From Caecitellus pseudoparvulus (lineage: Eukaryota; Protista; Bigyra: Bicosoecida), in NCBI GenBank assembly GCA_965644315.1, contig CBFFRQ010000079.1, positions 124,001-188,000 on the forward strand: a stretch of 64,000 nt of DNA. The letters run 5' to 3'. Below, piece after piece: positions 3,365 to 45,440 of the stretch. Within the stretch, counting starts at the first letter, position 1. Every line of letters begins with the position of its first letter. The position numbers and the translations under genes were made by a program. Under the pieces are notes generated by a model that was not told the DNA's origin, ran no database searches, and worked only from the letters and a program-made list of their open reading frames with translations.

Positions 3365-3568
3365 GGTGATGCTGAGGATGATGCAGCGAGGGTGTCAACG
3401 GCACCTGCAACAAGGCACAGTGAAGGTCAGTGGACGCATAGCACTGGTGGGGGCACTATTTTTTCTCCCCATCACCAGTTGCATCGCCCTTGTGCGCACT
3501 TTCATTGTCGTCCAACTGTGCCTGTCGCAGCAGGAGTTGTCTGCCTCAACCATCCCACCACGCCAAAC

Positions 3569-6167
3569 ATGGCTGCTGCCAGGGGTGAAGGCAAAGAGCA
3601 GGGCGTTTCCCGCGAAGAGGCCCTGGGGATTTTTTCGCTGTTCGATGCAGATGGATCCGGGACGATCGACCACTCCGAGCTGCGCGAGCTGGCCTTTGCG
3701 ATGGGCGTCACGTTGGGCCAGGACAAGGTGCGATGAGCACGCAGCCGATCCCACGTGGCACGGCTCGCCGCGCGTTGGTGGCGCCCTGCACACTGTGGCA
3801 GTACCTCAAGGCACTCAAGACTCACATGGCATTCCACCCATCCTTGTTTTGCAGCTCGAGGAGGCCTTCGCTGTCCTGGACACGGACAGTGCGTGCCTGC
3901 CCGCCGCCCGAGCCAAGTTGTAGTGGTTGAGGCTCACCCACGTTCGCTGCCCTCGCAGAGAGCGGGGCGATTGACTTCGAGGAGTTTTACGCCTGGATCA
4001 CCACAAGTGCTGAAGGGGAAGATGCCTCCACCATGCTGCAGTTGGAGATGCAGGCTCGGTGCGTCGCCTGACTGCCTTGCAGTGCTGTCCCCTGCGCCGA
4101 CACTGGCGCCTGACACGCCGGCCTATCCACAGACTTGCCGGGCGGGCGGCGCTCTCCATTGCGCGGAGCGTCATGGACCAACCATCTGGCGGAAAGGCCA
4201 GCACTATCAAGCTGGCCGTAGCTGCGGACTCTGGACCCGCACCTGCCGGCGCAGCGGAAGGGCTTGGTGCCAAGGTCAGCATCGTGCACGGCTCTGACGG
4301 TCTGGCGGCTCTGGAGGCTCGAGACGACGAGCCAGCTGCAGTGGCACTCATCCTGAACCTGGTGCAGGGCACTGACATGGATGTGGCGCTGGACTGGGTC
4401 ACCAACATGAACGGGCTTCTGGACTCGCTCATGGCAACCCACGCGCCACCGCAGGCCAAGGACGTCTTGTCCCGGGTCGCTGTGTCCGTGCGCCAGAGCA
4501 GCCCCGGCGGGCCGCCTCAGCTCGTGTTCGGAGCATATCTGCGCACAGACCCCGTGGCGATGGCACTGGAACAAGCACAAGCCAGTGGCTCTGCTCCTCC
4601 TGGGGCCCAGGAGCTCGCCGACATCTTTGGCGAGCACGGGCTGGAAATGCTGAGCCGGTTCTGCGTCGAGGCGAACCTGGGCACATCTGCGGCAGCGGGG
4701 CTGGGCATTGAGGAGAGCCCCGTCGAGCACGGCGGCATGCACGCGGGCCTGTCGCTGGAGCTTTCCCGCAGCGCCCTCATGGGCGTGGCCAAGGCGCTGA
4801 CCGCCCTGTCCTCCGCTCTGCCGCCGCCCATGCGCAGGCTGCTGCCCATTCCCATGAGGGACATTGTCTCGGTCTTCAAGGCGGCGCTGGCCCTGCGCAA
4901 GGTGGATGTGGACTTCGACGTGCCACTGGACTTCACACAGCAGTTGTTCAAAATGTTGACGCGGCGTAGCACAGCGCTGCCACCAGGCATCGTCGGCAAG
5001 CTGTACGGCGAGTGGGAGACCAAGACCCGGTCGGCGGAGTACATGCAGAAGCGCTTCTGCAGCATGATGCCTGGCATGGCCTTCCACGCCATGATGGAGG
5101 AGGTGGCACACGAGCTGCCCCGCATGCTGCAAGGCGCACCCCGCGACAAGGTCGCGGCTTGCAGCTCGTTCCTGCAAGCCCTCTTCAGCCCTCAGGTGGG
5201 GCTCTTCCCCTCTGCTTCCTGCCTTGAACAGGACATCGGCGTCGAGCGGCTGGCAGTGCCGCCGCCGGCCATGGACACCAGCGCCCTGCAGTGGACGGCC
5301 TGGCACGCAATGTGGCTGCTGCGCCATGTGGACACTGTGGAGGGCATCCACGCCAGTGTGCAGGGGACCACACTCTCTGTGGCGCTGCCCGGCATCGCCC
5401 TTGGCACCTTGCGCGACGCCTGCACTGCCGGCGCGCGCCGGGCGCTTGTGCGCGGGCGGCGACTGGAGGGCGAGAAGGAGGACATGGTGCAGCGGGAGGT
5501 CATTGTGGCTGGCAGCCATTGGACCCTGCTGTCCCAGCTGGCGCCGGCGTGCATTGCGCTGAACCGGTACCCTTTCGCGCCAGGCCTCGGCCAGACCACC
5601 CGAGTCCAGGCTGTGCCTGGCATGCTGCGCAGCCTCGGGTCCCCCAAGGAACTCACGGGCTTCGCGTCCACTGAGCTGCCCGCTGCTGAACTGCAAGGCG
5701 CAGCGCTCGCTGAGCTGCAGGCGCTGGCACAAGGTGGCCAAGCGTGGAGGCAAGTCTTTGGTGTGGCCTTGATCGTCGACGTGACGAGTACCGAGAGCGT
5801 TGCCGACACAGCGGCCCAGGTGGAAGCGTTGCGTGGCGCCGACCCCACCCATGCGCAGCCTGTGGTCGTCTTGGCAGACATCTCGGGCGCCAAGGCTTGG
5901 GATGCCCACCTGCAGCGTGACTTCGTCACCCTGCAAAATGTCCACGACGCGTCCATGGAGCACATGCCCTCAAAAGAAGAGCTCCTGGCGGACTTGGGCC
6001 TCGCAGCGGGCGGCCCTATTGCCAGCGCGCAGGTCGTGTTCGTGAATGGCCTGCATGGGCTCAACATCACGCACGCCTTCTCGCAGCTGGGCATCGCCGG
6101 CATGGCGCAAGCAGAGGAGACAGATGAAGGGTGGCAGGACATCATGGAGGAGATGTGTCGTGCGTGA
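3569..6167 (+). CDS. EF-hand pair protein with C-terminal degenerate Arf/Ras-like fold
   Basis: EF loops DADGSGTIDHSE and DTDKSGAIDFEE assembled across introns 3728-3854, 3889-3958 and 4059-4132; C-terminal region with Arf-like secondary-structure motifs. Confidence 0.75.
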
Positions 6168-6243
6168 GCAAGCGGTGCTGAAATGCATTGAGTCGTGCAG
6201 GCCTGGCGCCCCGAGCCGGAGCAAGCCTCAGCCCAGCGCGTCA

Positions 6244-9200
6244 TCACTTGCGCCGCCTCCCCGTGGGTGCGACAAGGGTTACATGTGCGCCGTCCGGAGG
6301 CTGCAGCCAGGTCACCCCCCCGTCCATGGACACTTCTGGGCGCACCGGTCCCACAGGCGCCAGTGGTTCGAGGTGCTGGGCCGCGTCACCCCCTGCCTCC
6401 TCTGAAACGATGGGCACAGTGGCGGATACGGTGACAGTGGACAGTAGCTCCGTCTGCTCTGCTGGCACCCCATCTTCGCTCATGACGGGAGGGGGCAGTG
6501 CAACGCTGCCTTTCAGCAGCAACACTGTGGGGGCGGCCCCCTCGCCGGCGTCCGGGTGGGCGGTGGCTCCTTCTTTGGGGACGAGGCGAATGGCCCAGCG
6601 CATGCCCTCCAAAAGGCGGGTGAGGTTGTGCGGCAGTTCTGGAAAGGGCGCCTCTTGCACGGGCAGTTTGTAGTGGGGGTGCACGGGGGTTCCCTCTGGC
6701 AGGTCCTGCCCGGCCTCCACGTCTGGCATAAGGGGCAGCTGGAGCGGCAGCAGGCTGAACCACCCGCCCAACGTGACAGTGACGGCCTCTCCATGCGGCA
6801 CCTTTCCCTTCTTACCCCCCCCCACGCCCGTGACGGAGATGGCATCAGCCAGGTGTGCCACGAGGAAGGCTGCAGAGGCTGGCTGCTCCTCACCCTCCTC
6901 AGCATCATCAGACACGCCGACTGCCTCCCCAGCCTTGCCTTCACCTGCGCCAGGGGTGCCATCAGCACTCTTGCCATCTGAATCCGTGGTGGGTGCCTCT
7001 TCCTGCAACCCTGTCGCATCCTCCACTTCGCCGCTGGCGGCGGGTGGGGCCAGCAGCTCATGAATGATTTCCACGGGCACGCCAGCAACCGCAGCGGACA
7101 GGGGCAGCAGGCGGGGCACACGGGGTGCAGGCGGCGTCTCGGGCACGCTGTCCTTTCGCCCGCTGCGCTTCTTGCTGCTCCCCCGTGGGCTCTCCCCGCC
7201 ACTCGCACTGCCAGCGGTCCCCACCCGTGGCACAACCAGCTCAGGCACTGACGTCAGCGCAGCAAGGGGGGGCAGGGTGATGAGGAGGGAGCCTGGGATG
7301 GCATTCAGCAGGGGCGCGCCAAGGCTGGCTGCCCCTGCGAAAGGCACGACGCGTGTTGATAGCGTGGTGGGGGAGGCATCCCCCCCCACGTCTGTCGCCA
7401 GCACCTGCAGAGACGTGGCATCCCACGCTGCGACGGCGTCCACGATGTGCGACACGTTCGCCCACAGGCCGAGCGGGGGACAGACAGTCGTGAAGGGGCC
7501 CGCCGAGGATGGGGCCAGCGCTGGGAGCAGAGCAGGGGTAGGCGGCCCGAACTTGGGGCAGGCGATGGCAAAGGTGACCACATGCCCATCTGCCTGCGCC
7601 CCTGTGGTAAGCGGAGCGCCTTCTGCGAGGGACAGCGCCACCTCGACATCCAGCGCCATGCGGCCCTCTGCCACGGCTGAAATGGAGAGGGGCTCACTGT
7701 CGCCAGCTCTCCCCGCTTCGCCCTGCTCCGCGTGCTGTGCTGCTTTGCTCAGCAACGCTCCCAGGGTGCTGGGCGACATCGAGAAGGAGACTGTGTTTCC
7801 TGACAGCACTGAAGCTGGGACCATGATGGGGTCAGGGACAGACACGGGCTCCTGGGCAGCTCCATTCCCGCCCGTGGCCCTCCACACAGCTGTGGGACGC
7901 AGGCCCACCTGAGCCGTGGCAGATGAGGCAAAGCCAGCGCCCCTCAGGTACACCACGACAGACTCCGGGAAGGAGGGGGCGAGAGGCACGACACCAGGCT
8001 CGCACCGGTCCAGGCACGGCGCAGCAGCGATGGCAGTGTGCGCTGCGGTGAAGAACGCGAAGCCGCCATTGGGACTGACCTCCGCGGCCAGTTCCAGGCC
8101 ACCCCCTGAGGCAGTCTTGATCTCGGCCTCCCGCCACGCCTCGTGCGCGCCATGGTACGTGTCCCAGGCAGCGCCTGCCTGGAGGGTTGCAGCTGCTTCG
8201 GTCGGGTCCATCTGCGCCTCTTCATCAGCACCAGCTGCTGTGACCTCCAGCGTGCCAGTTGCATCTTCCAGCGCGTCAGAAGGCGGAGGGCTTGCCGTGA
8301 CGGCACGTGCTGCAGCAAGCGCCTCAGGGGAGGGCGCTGGCACGAGGGGCGGCAAGGGGCGTCGCGGGGGTGGGCGAGGCAGCGCCTCCGGTGGAATCTT
8401 CACAGGCGGCACTCTCGCCCAGACCTTGGCTGAAAAGTGCCCTTGCAGTCTGTCCGCCGTCTCGTCATCGGAGCCTTCTTCGTCCAGGTCCACTCCTGTC
8501 TCGGCAGCCAGCTGCTCGGAGTAGTGGCCGGTATACCAAGCCGGCACAGTGGGCGTCGTGGCCACAGTGGACCCTGCATACAGGACTCGGAAGCGGGCCA
8601 CAGGGATGTGGGAAGTGGCAGGGGGTGGGTCCCCTGTGGCCTCACCTGGCGGACCACGTGGGGGGGGGCCTTCGCGAGGGGATGACGCCTCCGCTGCATG
8701 AGATGGGTGGGCTTGTGTGGGGCGGCCTTCGTGGGCAAAGGCCGTCGTATCCAAGACCAGGGGGGAGAATGGCAGCGGTACCGCAGCTCCTGCCTGCTCA
8801 ACGTCAGCCATCTCTGCTGCTTCCCGAGCTTCATTCTGCGCATGCACTTGGCGCAGCAAGGCCTGAGCCTCAGCCCGAGCTAAGGGGTCACTGAGCATGG
8901 CCCCGAACACACCTCTCCCAGACACAGACACAAGTGGGCCTTGCGGGACGTCAAAGAGTCGGGGGGGGGGCACAGGCCCATCACCGACGAGGGACACTTG
9001 CACGACGCTGGGCTGCAGGGAAGCCAGTTGGGGGGTGGCAAAGTACGAGAAGGGAGCTGATCCACGCACAGCGACCCAGGAGGGAGGGGGCACCTCCCCG
9101 GCCTCTTGGCTGTCAGGATCCACCTCCCCGGCGTCAATTGCAGCCTGAAGCTCCGCGGCCCACACGGGAGCAGGGCAGCGCACGACGATGTCGACTCGCA

Positions 9201-33118: not shown

Positions 33119-33539
33119 GCCTGCTGCGGATTTTGACTAGTGGTGGTTGCGCGATGCAGCTGGTGCTTGGTGAGATCTGGTGTTCCCTGGAACTGCAGTG
33201 AGCAAGGAACAACCCTTGGTGAAAACACCGTCCCCGGCAGGGCACAAACTCTGTCCTGTTGCGATTGGCGACCACTCATTGTTGTGTTGAGGGCACTGGA
33301 CTGGCTTGCGCAGCAGTGCAAGGTGGTTGATGGGTGTGCAAGGGGGGGTGCATGTGGCGCGGGTAGCGCTCAACCTGCACACTTGATCAATCCAGCAAGG
33401 ACAGAACACTATAGAGCTAGGACAGATGCAGATGGATACCGCTGATATATCTTAGGAGCCTTGGCTCGCTCCGAAGCTGTCTGTGGGTTACAGGTGGACA
33501 GTCTAGCAAGAGGCACCGCGCCCAAACTCTGCGCCAATC

Positions 33540-36500
33540 ATGGAAGGAAGAACCATGCTTCAGCATGCCAAAAGACGGATATCTGCTCTGAGGACGCTTG
33601 AAAGACTCCCGGCTCGCTTTTACGCATGCTTGTGCTTTGTGCTCTGTTGTCTGGCAGGGGCGCAGGGGGCGTGTCCTGGCATGTGCAGCGGGCACGGTAC
33701 CTGCGGCATCGGGAGCAAGTGCGCTTGCTTCCCTGGTTTTTCGGGGCCAAACTGTGCATTCCGTAGGTGATGTGTCAGATGCTTGCCTGGGCGCTCCTTG
33801 TTGGCACCTGCTTCAGCGTGCCACTTGCTCAGGCACGTGCCGTTTCGGGCACGCGTGGTTTGACAAACCAGCGCCGGACGGTTCGGCACATCGCAATGGG
33901 ACATGGTCGGAGTGCTCTCGGGCGGGCACATGCAATCGAATGACGGGGCAGTGTGTCTGTTCTCCAGGTTTTTCTGGGGATGCTTGCCAGCGTAGTGAGT
34001 TTGAGGTGCTTTGCAGCGGAAGTTGGAATTGCTGCGTTTCACTACCGTTTCCTTCGCCTCCTCCATGCCCCGTTCTCAGCGGCTTGCCCAAGAGGATGCA
34101 GTGGACGGGGAGTGTGCCAGCCACTGGAGGTAGTTGGGTATGAGCAAGGTGCTGCCGTCTACGACAGTGCTGATCTCAGTGGACTGAGCGTTGGGTACTG
34201 GTACTCAGATTGGGATTCTGGCAGGAGCCATGTTTGCGCTTGTGACAGAGGCATGCATGGGCCCGATTGCTCACTTCATGCGTGTCCGCGGGCAAGAGAC
34301 CCGTTGCAGAGAGGATTTCAAGAAAGGACCCTATCGCTACTCGCTGGCACTGCCGCCTATGACTTGGCAACGGAGCGGCTTGCAACACATGCCACGGTGG
34401 GACTGAAGTTCCATGGGGAAGTCGCCCAGTGGGCTCATGATGCCTCAAGTGCCGATGTGAAGGCTTCACTCGAAAATCTTGTCGCCATCAAGGCTGCACG
34501 AGTGAGGCGTGACACGATCGCGTCCTGTCGATTTTCCCCTGCGGGGTCCGGGACCTGCCTGAGCTGGACGTTCGCGCTTCAGTTTGCACCACTTGCAGAC
34601 AGCTCATTCTTCCGTACTGAAGGGAATCCGCCCAAGGAAGCATTCACTTGTGACCGAAGTGGGCTACACGGGGGGCTGTCCATTACCTCTGTGGCCTCTC
34701 ATGCCCTGCCAACTGGCTTTCTGCGTGTTGCCATGCACGCGTCCACGGCGGACCAGCTGTCCGTGGTGTTTTCAACTGCAGCCGACTTTGCGACGTCAAC
34801 GAGCCTGCAAGTGGAGGAAACAGGAGCAGGGAGCCCTGCTTTCACCTTCACATTGACGGGTGCTGGGCAGCGCATCACTGTGCTGTCCAGCACTTCAGCT
34901 CCCATGCTTGAGTTGACTTTCCAGTACGGGCCTGGAGTCTATTCGACGGGTGAGAGTTGGGTGCTGAATGTGAAAACCGGCATGATTGCGGAACAGGTAC
35001 TCCCAGAGCAAAGCGGGTGCGCTGTTGACGACGCTCAGCGAGAGGTGTCTGTGTACGACGGTGTGGACGCGGTGCCCCATACCGGCGCGGTCACGACCCG
35101 CTACACTGTGGAAGTTGCGGCGCAAGATGATGCCGCTGTCTGGAGTGCTGAGGGGCAACAAGACAAAACTGAGGTCGTCATGTCAACTGATTACACGGCA
35201 CTGGGCTCAAATGAGGCAAGGATTACGTTTTCTGACACAAAGCACCACACAGTCGGAGCTGCGTGGGAGCTCACAGCATACGCTCCTGCGGTACGGCCAG
35301 TTAGCAACTTCAGTGAGGGGCTCCTGCAAGTGTACGGAGACGCACTTTCAAGTGAAGGGCTTTTCTTTGCAAAGATATCGACTGCTGGCATGTTTCAGAC
35401 GAATGAGGTGACCTTCTGGTGCGCGGATGGCATGGTGGTGGACATGCACGCCACTTGCGAGACGACCTACGCTGGTGCCGTTGCGAGCGCTGCCTTCCAC
35501 ACAAAACCAATGCTGGTAGGTGGCCGTCATCGAGTCGAGTTTGACACTAACACAGCGGGGAGCAAAATTACGGTTTTCTGGAGCAACTCGACTGGATTCT
35601 CTTTGGCCCAGGAATGGGCTTTCCACACTGATGTCGCGGGAGGAGCCCAAGCCATTCCTCGACCAACGTCAGCACTTCAAGTGCAAGTCAAAGAATTTTG
35701 GGAAGCCGGAGAGTGGTTTGTGACGATTGACGGGGCCGCTGATAACGCGCCGGCAACCTTCAGCGCCATGCGGTACAACGACGCGTACCCACCCACCGAA
35801 GCCCGGGCCATCCCCATCAGGCCCTACTGGGCAGGGAATCACCCAGACACATCAGGGCCACATCGAGGTCACGGTATTCACGGGCTAGTGCTGCGGTTTC
35901 ACACCAGCGGCTGCGACCCGTACCTGACGCCAGGTACTGATTCCGACCATTGCTCCACACCCAACCCGTTCCGCATCGGGCAGCGATGGGTCGTAAACAT
36001 TACGACTGCAGGCTACGCAGAAGTTCGGCAGCACCCTAATCGCATTCTTCTTGATTCCTACCATGATGATTTGATCAGTGCAGCGTATCACAGCACATCC
36101 TCCGTGTTGCGGGTGGAGTACACCGGCGGCAGCCTGGCGGCTGATGCAACAAAGCAATCTCGTGTTCCTTACTTTCAGCGAAGGTTCCATGTCAAGATTG
36201 TCTCTGCTGGAGACTACGCGACGCTCGCCCCCGCGACGTTTCAAGTCTTCCTGGACGACGGCTCTGGAGGACAAAGTGCAGCCGGGCCAGCCGTTGCCAT
36301 CGACGCGGTCAACGGCAATGTTGTGGGTGGCCAGAGTAACATCAGGCTGTGGTTTGCAGACACCTATATGTATGCGCCAGGCGAGCATTGGCAAGTGGAC
36401 TGGGAGCTTCCAAGAGCCGAGGATGGTAGCACAGCAGGTGTCACTTTCGCGATTACCAAGGCGGCTGACGTACAAACCCACAAAGTGTGTGCTGGGAGAG

Positions 36501-39500
36501 GACTTTGCAGTTCAGGAAGTGGCAGATGCACCTGTTTCTCGGGTTTCAGAGGGCCCAGCTGCGCAGAAGTGACATCGACCACTGAGGCCCAAGGCGACCA
36601 ACCTTCCTTTACTGTGAGGACTTTGGGGCGAAGCTTCACTTCCACTTCCTTGCTCGTCGACACTGACAAGTCACCGGCGCCAGACTTCAAGCTCCTGTCT
36701 GCTGTGGCTGGAGGGACCGAGCAGCTTGCCTTGTCAGGCGACGGCAAGCTCCGCGTTTCCCGACTGCAGGCATCAGAGTTGAATGCTGACAGTGCTAGAA
36801 TTGGAGCGTCAGGACTGACTGTCGTCGATGGGGGAATGCGCGTGGAACGGGGAGGCATGACAGTGGAAGACAGTGGAATATTCGTCCACTCGCGGGCCGG
36901 CTGGTCTGCCGCGCAGCTGCGATCTTCAGTGCCTGACTTCGCGAGCACCCTCCTGAAGCTGGAAACAGCCCAAGCGGCAGTAGATGCAGGCAGCACATCC
37001 AACTTTAACTTCCTGACTGCAACGAACTGGGAGACAACTGCTGTCCCCGATGTCCTTGCCAACGAACAACGGGTACTTGAGGTGCAGGGAGACGGCAGTG
37101 TGCACCTGCTGGGGCAGTCTTCAGGCTTGGAAGTGCACCATGGTGGTGCGACGATTCATGATGGGGGTGCCATTGTTCGAGGGTCCACCTCTTACGCCCT
37201 TCAAGTTCTGGCCGCCTCTCCCTTCTTTTCCGGCAACTTGCTCCTGGTCGATGCCATCCATTCCACTGCAACCATACAAGCTGCTCACCTGCTTCGTGTG
37301 CGAGACGCCACTGGTGATGTGTTCACTGTGCATGGATCTGGCAGCACTGCAGCCTGGAGAGGTCTGCAGGTGCAATCAGGTGGCATCGACGTGGTGGGAG
37401 GCGGCCTGAGGGTGCAAGCTGGAGGTGCCACAGTGGAGGCTGGGGGGTTGTACTCAGACAACATCAGGACTGACTCGCTGCAAGTGGACAGTGGCGGCAT
37501 TGTCTTTGCAGACGGCACCACAAGCAACGATGTTCTTAGCCTTCGCAGCTATGTCACAGGGTCAAGCTATCTTCAGACGCTGTTGCGCATGGAGATTCTG
37601 ACGCCTTCTCCGACCTCCAGCTACATGACTGCGTCCACGGGGTCCAGCATTCGGTTCAGAGTCGGCCCTTACGGGAACACTTACCTTGGCTACTACCATG
37701 CAGTGGACCAACACACACAGGAGTACTCTTCGTTTGAGCTGGATTCCTCAATCCCGGGCTCAGAGGTTGTGCACTGGACTGTGAACAAGGCAGACCTTCG
37801 CATTCGCACCGGCCACGCGACCACGCGAGACGAGTCAACGAACATCGTCGTTGAAACACTTCAGGCGACAGCCGGAGTGGTTAATGGAGGTCATGTGTCA
37901 ATCTTGGCTGCTGATGGCCTTGGGGCGTCAGCCCTTGGAGGGAGCATCGTTCTGAAGCCTGGCAGTGGCACGGCGCCGGGGGAAGACGACGGAGATGTAA
38001 CTCTTCAAGACGACGATGGTGCAGACGTGGCGATCGTGAGGAACTTGGACTTTCTCGTGCGTGAGCGGGTGCGGTCAATCTCCATGGGAGGGTCTATCCA
38101 CATTGAACCAACGGAGCGCGACGGGTCAAGCCCCGGACTTGGCGGAGCTCTCAGCTTGGTGAGTGGCAGGGGGGAAGGCGCAGGCTCAGCCGGAGGGCAC
38201 ATGCTTCTCAGCTCAGGATCTGGGAGTGCTGCAGGAGGAGCAGCCGGCGAAATCAGCATATTGGGAGGAGATGCGGCAGGGTCATCTGCGTTGGGCGCAG
38301 CCGGAGGCAGTGTCCGCATTCAGGCAGGCGCAGGTCAAGGAGACACCGGCCCATTCGACGGCAGCACTGGAACAAGCGGCAATGTTGCCATTGTAGCAGG
38401 CAGTGGATTGGCTCAATCAAGTGGAGGGAACATTTTCCTGTCTGCTGGAGACGGGGCTTCAGCCCCGGGTGGCAGCATTGTCCTTGCACCGGGAACGGGT
38501 GCATCGCATGGCGGCATCGACCTCATGTCATCGACGGCAACCAAAGCGTTGGAAATCCCTCCCTCTTCTGTGGAGGTGCGAATCAACTCTGTGCTGGCAA
38601 CTATCGATCCCGGCCAGAGTCTTTCGGTTGAGCCAATGGCAGCTGGGAGCGGCGTCACGGGCGGGGACCTGAACCTGCACGGCGGCGACTCCGACGATCA
38701 ACCCGCTGGGAACTTGGTGCTATCCGCCGGACACAGTAAAGGTTCTGTTAACCACGGGAGGGTGCTGATTTCTGGCGGGGGGAGCGCAGCAAGCCAGCTT
38801 GAGATGCCGGCAGCATCATCGGACGTTGAAATTCGACAGCGTCTGAGTTCTATCCAGGCAGCGGCAAACATGGTCATTTCACCAAAAGATGCAACGTCAG
38901 GGAATGGTGGAAGTCTTACTCTCCAAGCTGGAACTGATGATGGGAGCAGTGTGGGTGGCCTTCTAAGCCTCCAAGGTGGATCCAGTGCAGGGGGAACCGG
39001 TGGGGGAATAACAATGACAAGCGGGGAGGCTCCAAGCTCCGCCATGCAAATCCTGGGAGGCGATACATCGGTATCTATTCGAGGAACCATTAACACTATT
39101 GCTCCTGGAGATTCCCTGATCATCGCGCCCACAGCAGCCACAGGCTCAGCTGCAGGCGGTGCCGTCTCCATCACAGCCGGTGGCGCAGACTCCGGCGCTG
39201 CAGGCACACTCGCCCTCGCAGGTGGTGACAGCACATCTGGCGCCGATGGCGCCGTCACCATCACTGGCGGCGGTGCGGCCAATGTCGGCCTGCAGATCAA
39301 CGGTGGTGAGAGCACTGTGCGTGTGCATGACACCGTGGACACCATCACAGCAGTGGACCTGACACTGCAGAGTGGCAGTGATGAGGTCATCATCAATGAC
39401 GCCCTGCGAGTGAGCACCATCCAGACGGCGGCAGGTGACATGACCATCAACTCGGCGGGCGGCACACTGCATGTCGTGGACACGCTGGAGGTGCAGGGCA

Positions 39501-42500
39501 CCATCCAGACGACCGCCGGTGTGGACATCACCCTCGCGCCGGGCGCGGGAGGCAAGGTCATCGCGAGCAATGAGCTGGAGGTGGCGGCTGCAATCACGAC
39601 GTCGGCAGGCGACATGACCATCAACTCGGCGGGCGGCACGCTGCATGTCGTGGACACGCTGGAGGTGCAGGGCACCATCCAGACGGCCGCCGGTGTGGAC
39701 ATCACCCTCGCGCCGGGCGTGGGAGGCAAGGTCATCGCGAGCAATGAGCTGGAGGTGGCGGCTGCAATCACGACGTCGGCAGGCGACATGACCATCAACT
39801 CGGCGGGCGGCACACTGCATGTCGTGGACACGCTGGAGGTGCAGGGCACCATCCAGACGGCCGCCGGTGTGGACATGATCATCGCGCCCACAGCAGCCAC
39901 AGACCCAGCTGCAGGCGGCGCCGTCTCCATCACAGCCGGTGGCGCAGACTCCGGCGCTGCAGGCACACTCGCCCTCGCAGGTGGTGACAGCACATCTGGC
40001 GCCGATGGCGCCGTCACCATCACTGGCGGCGGTGCGGCCAATGTCGGCCTGCAGATCTCCGGCGGTGAGAGCATTGTGCGTGTGCATGACACCGTGGACA
40101 CCATCACAGCAGTGGACCTGACACTGCAGAGCGGCAGTGACGAGGTCATCATCAATGACGCCCTGCGAGTGAGCACCATCCAGACGGCGGCAGGCGACAT
40201 GACCATCAACTCGGCGGGCGGCACACTGCATGTCGTGGACACGCTGGAGGTGCAGGGCACCATCCAGACGGCCGCCGGTGTGGACATCACCCTCGCGCCG
40301 GGCGCGGGAGGCAAGGTCATCGCGAGCAATGAGCTGGAGGTGGCGGCTGCAATCACGACGTCGGCAGGCGACATGACCATCAACTCGGCGGGCGGCACGC
40401 TGCATGTCGCGGACACGCTGGAGGTGCAGGGCACCATCCAGACGGCCGCCGGTGTGGACATGGTCATCGCGCCCACAGCAGCCACAGGCTCAGCTGCAGG
40501 CGGCGCCGTGTCCATCACAGCCGGTGGCGCAGACTCCGGCGCTGCAGGCACACTCGCCCTCGCAGGTGGCGACAGCACATCTGGCACCCATGGCGCCGTC
40601 ACCATCACTGGCGGCGGTGCAGCCAATGTCGGCCTGCAGATCAACGGTGGTGAGAGCACTGTGCGTGTGCATGACATCGTGGACACCATCACAGCAGTGG
40701 ACCTGACACTGCAGAGCGGCAGTGATGAGGTCATCATCAATGACGACCTGCGAGTGAGCACCATCCAGACCGCGGCAGGCGACATGACCATCAACTCGGC
40801 GGGCGGCACGCTGCATGTCGCGGACACGCTGGAGGTGCAGGGCACCATCCAGACGGCGGCAGGCGACATGACCATCAACTCGCGCCGGGCGCGCGACGCA
40901 AGGTCATGTCGCGAGCAATGAGCTGGAGGTGCAGGGCACCATCCAGACGGCGGCAGGCGACATGACCATCAACTCGGCGGGCGGCACGCTGCATGTCGCG
41001 GACACGCTGGAGGTGGAGGGCACCATCCAGACGGCCGCCGGTGTGGACATGGTCATCGCGCCCACAGCAGCCACAGACCCAGCTGCAGGCGGCGCCGTCT
41101 CCATCACAGCCGGTGGCGCAGACTCCACCGCTGCAGGCACACTCGCCCTCGCAGGTGGTGACAGCACATCTGGCGCCGATGGCGCCGTCACCATCACTGG
41201 CGGCGGTGCGGCCAATGTCGGCCTGCAGATCTCCGGCGGTGAGAGCATTGTGCGTGTGCATGACATCGTGGACACCATCACAGCAGTGGACCTGACACTG
41301 CAGAGTGGCAGTGACGAGGTCATCATCAATGACGATCTGCGAGTGAGCACCATCCAGACGGCGGCAGGCGACATGACCATCAACTCGGCGGGCGGCACGC
41401 TGCATGTCGTGGACACGCTGGAGGTGCAGGGCACCATCCAGACGGCCGCCGGTGTGGACATCACCCTCGCGCCGGGCGCGGGAGGCAAGGTCATCGCGAG
41501 CAATGAGCTGGAGGTGGCGGCTGCAATCACGACGTCGGCAGGCGACATGACCATCAACTCGGCGGGCGGCACGCTGCATGTCGTGGACACGCTGGAGGTG
41601 CAGGGCACCATCCAGACGGCCGCCGGTGTGGACATCACCCTCGCGCCGGGCGCGGGAGGCAAGGTCATTGCGAGCAATGAGCTGGAGGTGGCGGCTGCAA
41701 TCACGACGTCGGCAGGCGACATGACCATCAACTCGGCGGGCGGCACGCTGCATGTCGTGGACACGCTGGAGGTGCAGGGCACCATCCAGACGGCCGCCGG
41801 TGTGGACATCACCCTCGCGCCGGGCGCGGGAGGCAAGGTCATCGCGAGCAATGAGCTGGAGGTGGCGGCTGCAATCACGACATCGGCAGGCGACATGACC
41901 ATCAACTCGGCGGGCGGCACGCTGCATGTCGTGGACACGCTGGAGGTGCAGGGCACCATCCAGACGGCCGCCGGTGTGGACATGATCATCGCGCCCACAG
42001 CAGCCACAGACCCAGCTGCAGGCGGTGCCGTCTCCATCACAGCCGGTGGCGCAGACTCCGGCGCTGCAGGCACACTCGCCCTCGCAGGTGGTGACAGCAC
42101 ATCTGGCGCCGATGGCGCCGTCACCATCACTGGCGGCGGTGCGGCCAATGTCGGCCTGCAGATCAACGGTGGTGAGAGCACTGTGCGTGTGCATGACACC
42201 GTGGACACCATCACAGCAGTGGACCTGACACTGCAGAGTGGCAGTGATGAGGTCATCATCAATGACGCCCTGCGAGTGAGCACCATCCAGACGGCGGCAG
42301 GCGACATGACCATCAACTCGGCGGGCGGCACGCTGCATGTCGTGGACACGCTGGAGGTGCAGGGCACCATCCAGACGGCCGCCGGTGTGGACATCACCCT
42401 CGCGCCGGGCGCGGGAGGCAAGGTCATCGCGAGCAATGAGCTGGAGGTGGCGGCTGCAATCACGACGTCGGCAGGCGACATAACCATCAACTCGGCGGGC

Positions 42501-43655
42501 GGCACACTGCATGTCGTGGACACGCTGGAGGTGCAGGGCACCATCCAGACGGCCGCCGGTGTGGACATGATCATCGCGTCCACAGCAGCCACAGGCTCAG
42601 CTGCAGGCGGTGCCGTCTCCATCACAGCCGGTGGCGCAGACTCCGGCGCTGCAGGCACACTCGCCCTCGCAGGTGGTGACAGCACATCTGGCGCCGATGG
42701 CGCCGTCACCATCACTGGCGGCGGTGCGGCCAATGTCGGCCTGCAGATCAACGGTGGTGAGAGCACTGTGCGTGTGCATGACACCGTGGACACCATCACA
42801 GCAGTGGACCTGACACTGCAGAGTGGCAGTGATGAGGTCATCATCAATGACGCCCTGCGAGTGAGCACCATCCAGACGGCGGCAGGCGACATGACCATCA
42901 ACTCGGCGGGCGGCACACTGCATGTCGTGGACACGCTGGAGGTGCAGGGCACCATCCAGACGGCCGCCGGTGTGGACATCACCCTCGCGCCGGGCGCGGG
43001 AGGCAAGGTCATCGCGAGCAATGAGCTGGAGGTGGCGGCTGCAATCACGACGTCGGCAGGCGACATGACCATCAACTCGGCGGGCGGCACGCTGCATGTC
43101 GTGGACACGCTGGAGGTGCAGGGCACCATCCAGACGGCCGCCGGTGTGGACATCACCCTCGCGCCGGGCGCGGGAGGCAAGGTCATCGCGAGCAATGAGC
43201 TGGAGGTGGCGGCTGCAATCACGACGTCGGCAGGCGACATGACCATCAACTCGGCGGGCGGCACGCTGCATGTCGATGATGATGTGTTGGTTAGTGGTAC
43301 GGTCGCCGGTAGGTCTCCTACTACCTCCAGTGTGTCTACATCTTCGACGCTAGGAGTTGCCGAGAGCGGAGGCTACTTTGGCTTCTCCCCTTCTGGAGCT
43401 ATAACTGTCACGCTGCCTACGACTCTAGCAGGGACAAAGTTTATCATTTGTTGCGAGGTGTGCACGAGCTCAGACACAGTGCAGCTGTCGCCAGTTCCTG
43501 TCGGGTTTGTGGTGTCTGGCTCTGCGGGTGCTAGTCCGACGATGAGAAGCCTGGCAACTCACCCGAAGTTCGCGGAGTCTGGCACCTGCGCGGAGATTGT
43601 GTATGATGGGACATCTTACCGCATTTTGCATGCAATAGGTCTGTTTGAAACTTGA
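33540..43655 (+). CDS. giant secreted protein: mastigoneme-type (SIG1/Ocm1-like) EGF region plus Gly-rich beta-repeat fibre and C-terminal knob; one frameshift at ~40880-40925
   Basis: Signal peptide; CPGMCSGHGTC, TCRFGHAWFD, ECSRAGTCNRMTGQCVC, WD..C.CD.G..GPDCSLHACPRARDPL, CAGRGLCSSGSGRCTCFSGFRGPSC; introns 33763-33832 and 33995-34079; the same repeats continue in ORF 40929-43655. Confidence 0.8.
39118..43275 (+). repeat. coding tandem repeat array built from three modules (A ~106 aa x6; B and C 29 aa each, BC unit 174 bp)
   Basis: B = DMTINSAGGTLHVVDTLEVQGTIQTAAGV, C = DITLAPGAGGKVIASNELEVAAAITTSAG; B starts at 39437 and 39611 (174 bp apart); near-identical at the nucleotide level. Confidence 0.95.
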
Positions 43656-43659
43656 AAAT

Positions 43660-45440
43660 TCATTGTGGTGCTTGCCCGTGCGACCCATCATCTCCGTGCG
43701 CCTGCTGCGCGTCAAGTGACAGCACGATCCCCGGCTCTGGGCCGCGGGCTTGCAAAGTAGCGGGCCGATGGTGGTCTTCATACCCCCCTTCAATACCTTG
43801 GCGTGGCCTCTTTGCTCCCCCGACTCGGATTCCGGGTGCTGCCAGTGGGATTTGGTGCGCCTCAAACGTGGCACGGTGAACAGAGCCACCCTGTCGAACC
43901 TTGGCAGCCTTTGCTCGCATGAGGGGGAGCCAGATGCGCTTTCTCTCATTACGGAACCAATTTGACACTTGGGTCATCGTCAGGTTTGTTTTGAATGCGA
44001 GTTCCTTCTTCTGTGCTTCCGAGGGATACGGGTCTCCCCAGTGGGGCATGTCTGCCATCCAGAACTTCAAGATGCAAACTTGGTACACTTTCAAGCGGGC
44101 AATGGTCTTCATGATCCGGGCTTTGTCTAAGTATTCTGAGGGCACATCTGGGTGGCAGGTGAATCCAGGAGGCGGGTTGAACCAAGCAGGATCGAAGGCT
44201 TGCCGACGGGAGGCGACACGCTTTGCTCGCCGGGTGCGCTTGTCCTCGGCCTGCTCTGACCCCTGAGTGTAGTCGGAGTGTGCTTCTGTTTGCACGAGCT
44301 GTGTTGGTTGTGTCCATGATTCGGCAGGCTCGACCCTCGTCGCTTGCGAGCTTTGTGAGCCTGCAGTGCCGTATGCTGCAGCAGCGGCAGCAGCAGCAGC
44401 CATGGCGGCAGCTGCGGCCGGACTAGAGTACTCGGCTGAGGGCTGGTAGGCAAGCTGGTAGGCAACCTGGCCGCCTTGCGTTGCAAAAGAAGGGATCATG
44501 GTTGGGAACATCCCGGTGCTGGTGCTAGCAGCAGTGCTTGCGTGGCCCACTTGCTCTGATTTCGACGACGGAAGGCTGCGAGTTGAGTTCGGGATAGTGC
44601 TCGTCTCCTGCGAGGAGGCACGAATTCTGGGAGCTCTTGCACGGCTTCCGGTCCTTTCATTCGTCGTGGAAGGGTATGAGTTCGCATACTGCCAGGCATA
44701 GGCGGCTGACACGGCGCTGCTGTACGCTGCCTGTTGGTAGAGCGCTTGCTGTGCCACACTTGTGTGCTGCTGGAAGTAGGAGTGGCTTGCTTGGGACATT
44801 GGCGGCTGGTACACCGCAGCAGCTTGGGTGTATCCGCTCCCACCACCAGAAGTGTACACCACAGGCTGTGTCCGACCCGTGTGCTCGGTCCAGCTGGTGT
44901 GCATGGGTGCTGACGTGCTTGCAATCGCGCACAGCGCCACGGAAGGCTGCACAGCAGAGAGTGGCATGAGCTGCCCTTCCTCTGGGTGGTTTTGATGCAT
45001 CGCCACATTCGATGCCAAGCTGCTTGCACCCGTGCCCGCCGTGTGCAGCGTTGCTCCAGAGCTCAGTTGTGCGTGGGAAACGCCAACGCTTTGCAGGTGG
45101 TCAACGGCCTCAAGCCCTCCCACCGCTACCACATTGTCGTGACTTGCAGACCGTGGAAAGGCCGTCAGAGAGTACCGTTCAGCGCCTTGTATGTAGGGCT
45201 GCATCTCGTACTCCTCTTCTGTCCGCTCAATTGGCTTCTCTGTGGCGGCATGGTGCGTGTGACTTCCGTGAAGCACTGCACCAGCAGCTTCTTCGAGGCA
45301 GGGCGCTCACCAGCCGCTTCGGCCCCATCAACGTCAGTTATCTCCGGAAGTCCACTCCAAAATTCGTCTTTGTGGCCCTTACTTGCGGCCTTCTCTTGCT
45401 TCCTGGGCGCATCATGGATTGGAGCAGCCTGCGTTGCCAT
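43660..45440 (-). CDS. TALE-class (Homeobox_KN) homeodomain transcription factor
   Basis: ILKFWMADMPHWGDPYPSEAQKKELAFKTNLTMTQVSNWFRNERKRIW; Q/S/A/Y-rich N-terminal region; one intron near 45240-45310. Confidence 0.9.

Follow-up and report, generated by a model that had tools for sequence, protein, structure and literature searches.

A giant glycine-rich fibre protein that may have grown out of the mastigoneme family in a marine stramenopile flagellate

Stramenopiles are defined by their tubular flagellar hairs (mastigonemes), through which flagellar thrust is reversed. To our knowledge, the known components of these hairs are only short shaft proteins, and not those of the thin terminal and lateral filaments. 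In the non-tubular hairs of a green alga, Chlamydomonas MST1 is a hydroxyproline-rich polyproline helix polymer with Ig-like domains and has an unrelated architecture. For Phytophthora, the introduction of a preprint describes the mastigoneme proteins (PnMas) as carrying three EGF-like domains and as unique to flagellate stramenopiles. Here we analyse a gene at positions 33540-43655 of a 64,000-nucleotide stretch of the Caecitellus pseudoparvulus genome (assembly GCA_965644315.1, contig CBFFRQ010000079.1, positions 124,001 to 188,000; this whole stretch is called the window), in which a mastigoneme-type head is joined to a long glycine-rich fibre. Our preferred reading, to which we assign a probability of about 50%, is that the gene is nuclear, belongs to a marine stramenopile flagellate and codes for a giant secreted Gly-rich fibre protein that grew out of the mastigoneme family and forms a filament on the flagellar hair. 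Taken by itself, the architecture (a secreted head derived from the mastigoneme family, a beta-helical fibre and a knob) is very probably as described; the proposed place, as a filament on the flagellar hairs whose head is co-assembled with short family members, is tentative.

The features common to this protein and to SIG1, Ocm1 and PnMas1-3 are a signal peptide directly before C-P-G-M-C and the first EGF, three N-terminal EGF-like units, a WD...CxCDxGxxGxDCS...CP..DDPL motif, an EVQ-type domain and a last EGF, and short canonical members are found in the same genome. The head, of about 950 residues, starts with a signal-peptide-like stretch that is followed directly by C-P-G-M-C, and then contains EGF 1, a linker, EGF 2, a split EGF 3, the EVQ-type domain, an insert of about 600 residues and the last EGF, an order that we take to agree with the layout of SIG1, Ocm1 and the Mas proteins. 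Searches, alignments and folds were each run on one exon or piece, and a Pfam scan of all pieces returned EGF domains only. In the WD...DPL block, defined from the relatives found here and from the family papers, W44, D45, C52, C54, G60, C63, C68, P69, D73 and P74 are invariant in the alignment. The head aligns with relatives in public data and with two short paralogues on contig C18 of the same genome; word-indexed homology searches returned only unnamed relatives and no named mastigoneme protein, the cluster names being uninformative. On this alignment and layout, the head appears to derive from the mastigoneme (SIG1/Ocm1/Mas-type) family.

There are two departures from the family plan. First, the insert of about 600 residues stands before the last EGF: where the last EGF of canonical members starts, only E-x-x-x-C-x-x-x-G is kept, and a complete EGF is reached only at 36482-36577, after the insert. 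No Pfam family was found on this insert. An iterative profile weakly connects its residues 340-403 and 691-790 (numbered in the exon-3 piece), and one module of the same type also occurs in a giant paralogue on C18. Second, whereas the canonical short paralogues (about 450 residues, on C18) stop 5-10 residues past the last EGF, one of them after a short low-complexity tail, no stop follows the last EGF here, and about 1,450 more codons are present as assembled, or about 2,400 across a frame break discussed below. A sequence-only reading of the window had already reported the signal peptide, the three EGF-like units, the WD...DPL motif, a long spacer with a final EGF, and a mastigoneme layout whose members normally end there. 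All of this holds: the N-terminus is signal-peptide-like on inspection of the translation, Pfam recovers the EGFs of exons 1 and 2 and the final EGF in the exon-3 piece, EGF 3 and the motif align with the canonical paralogues, and these have the same module order and end right after their last EGF.

Short canonical mastigoneme-type genes form a cluster in C18:618001-628000 (frames 3370-4311, minus; 5077-6264, minus; 7389-8560, plus), about 15 kb from the giant paralogue. Elsewhere in the genome the module is reused in several architectures, as in the 1,611-codon frame at C13:421134-425966, which has many EVQ-type modules and two mastigoneme-type EGF blocks.

Three lines of evidence bear on whether head and fibre are one gene. 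The frame at 33953-40921 (2,322 codons) stays open across EGF 3, the last EGF and the 1,450 shaft residues that come after it. The giant paralogue at C18:641785-653814 is a 4,010-codon open frame with the same module order as the locus: a CP..DNP block, an EVQ-type domain, one beta module, an EGF, a B-like region, about 20 diverged Gly-rich supermodules and an end domain of about 110 residues. Shaft region B is 29% identical to its equivalent in this paralogue, and the knob has no detectable similarity to the paralogue's end domain. Lastly, a contig from a second strain (CAJNDU010031129.1, 2,572 nt, from GCA_905221625.1, labelled Symbiodinium sp. KB8) is 98.2% identical to 34938-37509, with zero indels and zero stops over that interval. 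The differences are 31 synonymous and 15 non-synonymous (ratio of non-synonymous to synonymous polymorphism, pN/pS, 0.16), and in the shaft part of the contig 20 are synonymous and 6 codons are changed. Together, the unbroken frame, the order of the paralogue and the second-strain contig indicate that the fusion of head and fibre is real and under purifying selection. The same three lines rule out two separate genes for the EGF part and the fibre part, in keeping with the single gene first proposed. We found no description of such a head-fibre fusion in the literature searched.

The KB8-labelled contig most likely comes from a contaminating or associated stramenopile protist. Its annotated gene model, CAE7871659.1, mistakenly treats the last EGF as intron. 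Additionally, the stretch 33400-41400 turns up in sequencing runs from 11 studies, among them several marine metagenomes and some runs that carry the names of four other organisms; it seems that the protist is widespread and often accompanies cultures.

The shaft contains no cysteine and no N-glycosylation sequon, is 11-20% glycine, and shows hydrophobic alternation besides periods of 7-8 and 15-16 residues. Glycines are spaced 7-8 residues apart in region B, while region C and the C18 paralogue have in common a supermodule of 140-197 residues with a 15-16 residue period. Each unit of region D consists of one X module (about 110 residues) and an odd number of alternating 29-residue units, a and b, with the sequences DMTINSAGGTLHV and DITLAPGAGGKV. 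The order is X ababa, X aba, X a[b*]a, X abababa, X aba, X ababa and then the knob, where b* denotes an aberrant unit; Tandem Repeats Finder reports a period of 174 with 96-99% matches. With its six higher-order repeat units, the array hints at a way in which fibre length could change quickly. The repeats noticed earlier, namely F.V.G.G / GGL.V..GG, the Gly-rich GG.h.h..G type and the pair of 29-residue units, are all seen in the translation. By sequence, the shaft matched no family in Pfam, the PDB (single query and profile), PHROGs or the word-indexed homology search.

The sequence-only reading had described a protein of about 3,300 residues. The gene is spliced, with two GT-AG introns (Table 1), and no single frame of about 3,300 codons exists in the assembly. 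Near 40880-40925 the frame runs 2 -> 1 -> 0, and three-frame translation places a stop codon at 40919-40921 inside unit b*, at a break (40868-40958) that the earlier reading had missed. The product as assembled is 2,408 codons long, and the remaining 908 codons, including the knob, lie in another frame. Taken at face value, with its two frame changes and stop, the assembly describes either a pseudogene that broke recently or a product cut short at 2,408 residues; in this reading the break is real, and the last 908 codons, with the knob, are not made. Long open reading frames (ORFs) also occur on the opposite strand of the repeats, so that the open frame downstream is weak evidence against such a break. 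The composition of b* points the other way. Unit b* is 91 nt long against the usual 87 (+4 nt), and in the DNA alignment it is a fine-scale mosaic of a-type and b-type sequence, as a mixed consensus would give. It occupies exactly the slot where the repeat grammar demands a b unit, and downstream of it follow 908 clean codons in which the grammar and the unique knob are undamaged. Over this region, the Logan contigs of four runs from four studies (one run containing 84% of the region's words) carry only canonical in-frame units, with two letters left out at 40907, and the exact words of b* are seen in none of them; such contigs show presence and cannot prove absence. We think it most likely that assembly or polishing went wrong among the near-identical repeats, by about two to one over a real recent break, and we consider a pseudogene or truncated product unlikely.

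The fold of the shaft was approached through an AlphaFold2 model of one supermodule (38849-39439), made from a 20-row alignment whose rows are internal repeat copies of two paralogues. It shows an extended chain with no intrachain secondary structure (predicted local distance difference test, pLDDT, 67). Foldseek found no match for it in the PDB. An exhaustive structural aligner gave 6 of 48,161 PDB chains at Z >= 2, the best being the T4 gp5 fragment 6p20_C (Z 4.0, root-mean-square deviation (rmsd) 3.1 A over 107 of 109 residues), followed by a second T4 gp5 fragment (Z 3.5), a VgrG spike (Z 3.4), the sarcoglycan chain g of 9c3c (Z 2.6), the phage tail-fibre hyaluronidase HylP1 (Z 2.5) and the Streptomyces hyaluronidase Hyal_Sk (4ufq_B, Z 2.2). 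The first five of these six chains belong to known triple-stranded beta-helix proteins. Shape matches in the ESM Atlas, at template-modelling (TM) scores of 0.67-0.76, comprise two clusters of Peptidase_S74 phage tail fibres, one diatom cluster and one myxobacterial cluster. A protein language-model look-up gave HylP, DUF2345 (VgrG), sarcoglycan (Sarcoglycan_1) and bactofilin as weak leads. No match was found to Peptidase_S74, DUF2345 or Hyaluronidase_1 (Pfam, E <= 1) or to a PHROG tail-fibre family (E <= 0.1), and a PDB profile search reached VgrG only at a non-significant E of 0.48.

It is probable that the Gly-rich supermodules form a three-chain, triple-stranded beta-helix, and only probable in view of the low Z values and the self-derived alignment. 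The triple-stranded beta-helix is known mainly from phage fibres and bacterial spikes, and if confirmed this would be a rare eukaryotic case. One other possible fold is a one-chain beta-solenoid, which would make the protein a monomeric rod. A single-sequence model of the 29-residue a/b units indeed has intrachain strands and matches one-chain beta-helices at Z 8-11, and bactofilin is among the language-model leads. That model has a pLDDT of 51, whereas the better-supported supermodule model has no intrachain sheet and its PDB matches are led by three-chain beta-helix proteins; a monomeric rod is in our view the doubtful alternative.

With the gp5 needle, VgrG, HylP1 and Peptidase_S74 fibres, the protein has in common the predicted chain shape of the supermodule, a glycine-marked period of 7-8 residues and a long fibre ending in a small domain. 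Unlike them, it belongs to no common sequence family, lacks Peptidase_S74, is eukaryotic, spliced, secreted through the endoplasmic reticulum and far longer, and bears at its N-terminus an EGF head, not a baseplate or tail adaptor. Sarcoglycans, of the animal dystrophin-glycoprotein complex, are likewise eukaryotic and extracellular and contain a triple-stranded beta-helix (the 9c3c chain above), but they are short type II membrane proteins in a heterotrimer, without sequence similarity to the shaft. The one-chain adhesins (the TpsA proteins FHA, HMW1 and HxuA, tapirins and Candida Awp) are also giant, Gly/Ser/Thr-rich, repeat-built extracellular rods, and it is these that the low-confidence model of the 29-residue units matches at Z 8-11; the shaft, however, has no TPS domain or other family signature, and its better model favours the three-chain helix.

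The terminal domain of about 110 residues was first described as lacking a transmembrane segment, and it contains cysteines and indeed has no hydrophobic tail. This knob is unique within its own genome. A phmmer search against 1.84 billion representatives gave no true relative and one spurious repeat protein, and no relative was found in IMG/VR, in JGI metagenome contigs or, by tblastn, in GenBank phages. The hints that exist come from profiles and models. A PHROG family whose function is unknown, phrog_36859, matches at E 1.5e-4, weakening to 0.016 when scored genome-wide. The C-terminal domain of tailspike 24qj matches at a Foldseek E of 0.025, and with a Z of 8.2 and an rmsd of 2.8 A across 84 residues, and many BFVD models of phage tail-fibre or unnamed proteins match over 113-138 aligned columns with up to 26% identity (E 2.7e-4 to 4e-2). 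The structure model is poor across the knob (pLDDT 28-65), and the possible resemblance to phage tailspike and tail-fibre end domains is for this reason a lead only. Of the likeness to trimeric phage fibres that the sequence-only reading had suggested for both shaft and terminal domain, the shaft part gains from the match of the supermodule model to triple-stranded beta-helix chains and Peptidase_S74 models, and the knob part is left with weak hints. The Foldseek check suggested with it gave the supermodule model no PDB match and the knob its weak match to 24qj.

A viral origin had also been suggested. In this explanation a virus or bacterium supplied the shaft and knob, which then became joined to a mastigoneme gene of the host, as could be read from the shape matches to Peptidase_S74 tail fibres, gp5, VgrG and HylP1 and from the three knob hints to phrog_36859, the BFVD tail-fibre models and tailspike 24qj. 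The sequence databases searched offer no significant counterpart. No relative of the knob, the B region or the supermodule was found in IMG/VR, JGI metagenome contigs, prokaryote genome contigs or GenBank phages; PHROGs yielded no tail-fibre family and only the one borderline match on the knob, to a family of unknown function, which falls to E 0.016 genome-wide; the shaft has neither Peptidase_S74 nor any other Pfam family; and the model of the knob is of low confidence. The paralogue, at 29% identity and with about 20 diverged supermodules, speaks for a long evolution inside this genome, and there is a diatom cluster of the same shape. The base composition of the locus is like that of its flanks, and the gene has introns. 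We regard acquisition from a virus or bacterium as improbable, and a recent viral or bacterial origin is unsupported; an ancient capture is conceivable. That the locus is a bacterial contaminant was ruled out by its splicing, its host-like composition and the paralogue in the genome.

If the preferred reading of a fibre on the flagellar hair is correct, the repeats would fold into a beta-helical shaft, with the small C-terminal beta domain acting as trimer nucleus, binding tip or both. Three chains would wind into one stiff filament of about a tenth of a micrometre, and the three cysteine-rich heads at its base would co-assemble with the short canonical mastigoneme proteins, so that the whole would extend outward from the flagellar hair, as one of its terminal or lateral filaments. 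The length is an order-of-magnitude estimate: in gp5 each residue spans roughly 0.6 A, and at a similar rise a triple helix of 2,400 residues would be about 0.1 micrometre long. With a mastigoneme-type head in one frame with a long, probably beta-helical fibre, the protein is a concrete candidate for the fine hair filaments. Chlamydomonas MST1, a glycoprotein that forms a flagellar hair filament, is likewise giant and secreted. A far more specific version is one we consider unlikely: that tubular mastigonemes have as their terminal or lateral filaments the product of this locus and that of its C18 paralogue, as homotrimeric, phage-fibre-like triple beta-helices with three mastigoneme-type heads plugged into the hair shaft and a binding knob at the tip, their fold either independently invented or anciently captured from a virus.

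Several points weigh against a filament on the flagellar hair. The frame break may be real. The support for the fold is modest (Z at most 4, pLDDT 67, an alignment self-derived from two paralogues), the models are of single chains from which the three-chain state is inferred, and the 29-residue units, modelled from a single sequence (pLDDT 51), give an adhesin-like beta-solenoid of one chain. Since the genome carries the mastigoneme-type module at 13 or more other sites, the head alone is no proof of a site on the flagellar hair. The likeness to the localised proteins Ocm1, SIG1 and PnMas1-3 was judged by layout and through unnamed relatives. Among the RNA runs searched, none contains the gene.

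These points leave room for a main rival, in which the protein is a general cell-surface or matrix fibre (an adhesin, a coat, or a prey- or substrate-binding fibril) that reuses the EGF/EVQ module and is unrelated to flagellar hairs. The further copies of the module stand in very different contexts, such as the 1,611-codon EVQ-rich frame, and the adhesins that the model of the 29-residue units resembles at Z 8-11 include tapirin, Awp, FHA and HMW1; no RNA run was found to contain the gene. Yet mastigoneme proteins are unique to flagellate stramenopiles according to the preprint introduction cited above, three canonical short members are clustered on the contig of the paralogue, about 15 kb from it, and the head retains the whole module order and not isolated EGFs. 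A general surface fibre is possible on this evidence, and we hold it to be unlikely.

The coordinates of the features are collected in Table 1. The locus contains three long plus-strand ORFs (33598-34143, 33953-40921 and 40929-43655), and its Pfam EGF matches fall in three different frames. Exons 1, 2 and 3 are collinear with residues 25-54, 57-106 and 109-239 of P0002, an intron-free relative. Since the three exons match consecutive parts of that protein, the predicted three-exon splice model is well supported from genomic sequence alone.

Table 1. Positions of the features of the fibre gene in the window, with the evidence for each (aa, amino acids; h, hydrophobic residue).
Feature	Position	Strand	Evidence
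Whole locus	33540-43655	+	all motifs listed by the sequence-only reading present
Exon 1 (start codon ATG at 33540, signal-peptide-like hydrophobic stretch, EGF 1)	33540-33762	+	translation; Pfam EGF_Teneurin E 4e-8
Intron 1, 70 nt, GT..AG, phase 1	33763-33832	+	sequence; frame shift 0 -> 1; exons on either side match neighbouring parts of P0002
Exon 2 (C-x-F-G-x-A-W-x-D linker and EGF 2)	33833-33994	+	Pfam EGF_2 E 2e-7; 45% identity to P0002 residues 57-106
Intron 2, 85 nt, GTGAGT..AG, phase 1	33995-34079	+	sequence; frame shift 1 -> 2; exon 3 resumes at P0002 residue 109
Start of exon 3: split EGF 3 with WD...CxCDxGxxGPDCS...CP..DPL, EVQ-type domain, vestigial start of last EGF (E-x-x-x-C-x-x-x-G)	34080-34669	+	alignment with two canonical C18 paralogues and P0002/P0014; BLASTP E 5e-15 to P0002
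Insert of about 600 aa, beta-rich modules, several with G..W.h ends	34670-36481	+	translation; absent from canonical mastigoneme-type proteins
EGF 4, where canonical members end	36482-36577	+	Pfam EGF_Teneurin E 1.8e-6, residues 801-828 of exon-3 piece
Shaft region B: F.V.G.G / GG-h-x-V units	36578-37843	+	translation; glycine autocorrelation at lag 7 = 0.29
Shaft region C: diverged Gly-rich supermodules, GG-x-V-S-I-x-A-G type	37844-39106	+	jackhmmer domains; alignment; periodicity; AlphaFold2 model spanning 38849-39439 into first X module
Shaft region D: six higher-order units	39107-43322	+	Tandem Repeats Finder; repeat grammar
Aberrant repeat unit b*	40868-40958	+	sequence; three-frame translation; DNA alignment
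C-terminal knob of about 110 aa and stop codon	43323-43655	+	translation; 4 Cys, no hydrophobic tail

Reverse-strand ORFs of 224-786 codons lie across the repeat array (38698-43271, minus) and were rejected as genes, being by-products of the GC-rich repeats. The hexamer AATGCA, a candidate poly(A) signal, is absent from the plus strand of the gene and of the 850 nt downstream. A convergent homeobox gene (W-F-x-N-x-R) occupies 43660-45276 on the minus strand; its stop codon and that of the fibre gene are separated by 4 nt (window positions 43653-43662), and the 3′ ends of the two genes must therefore overlap.

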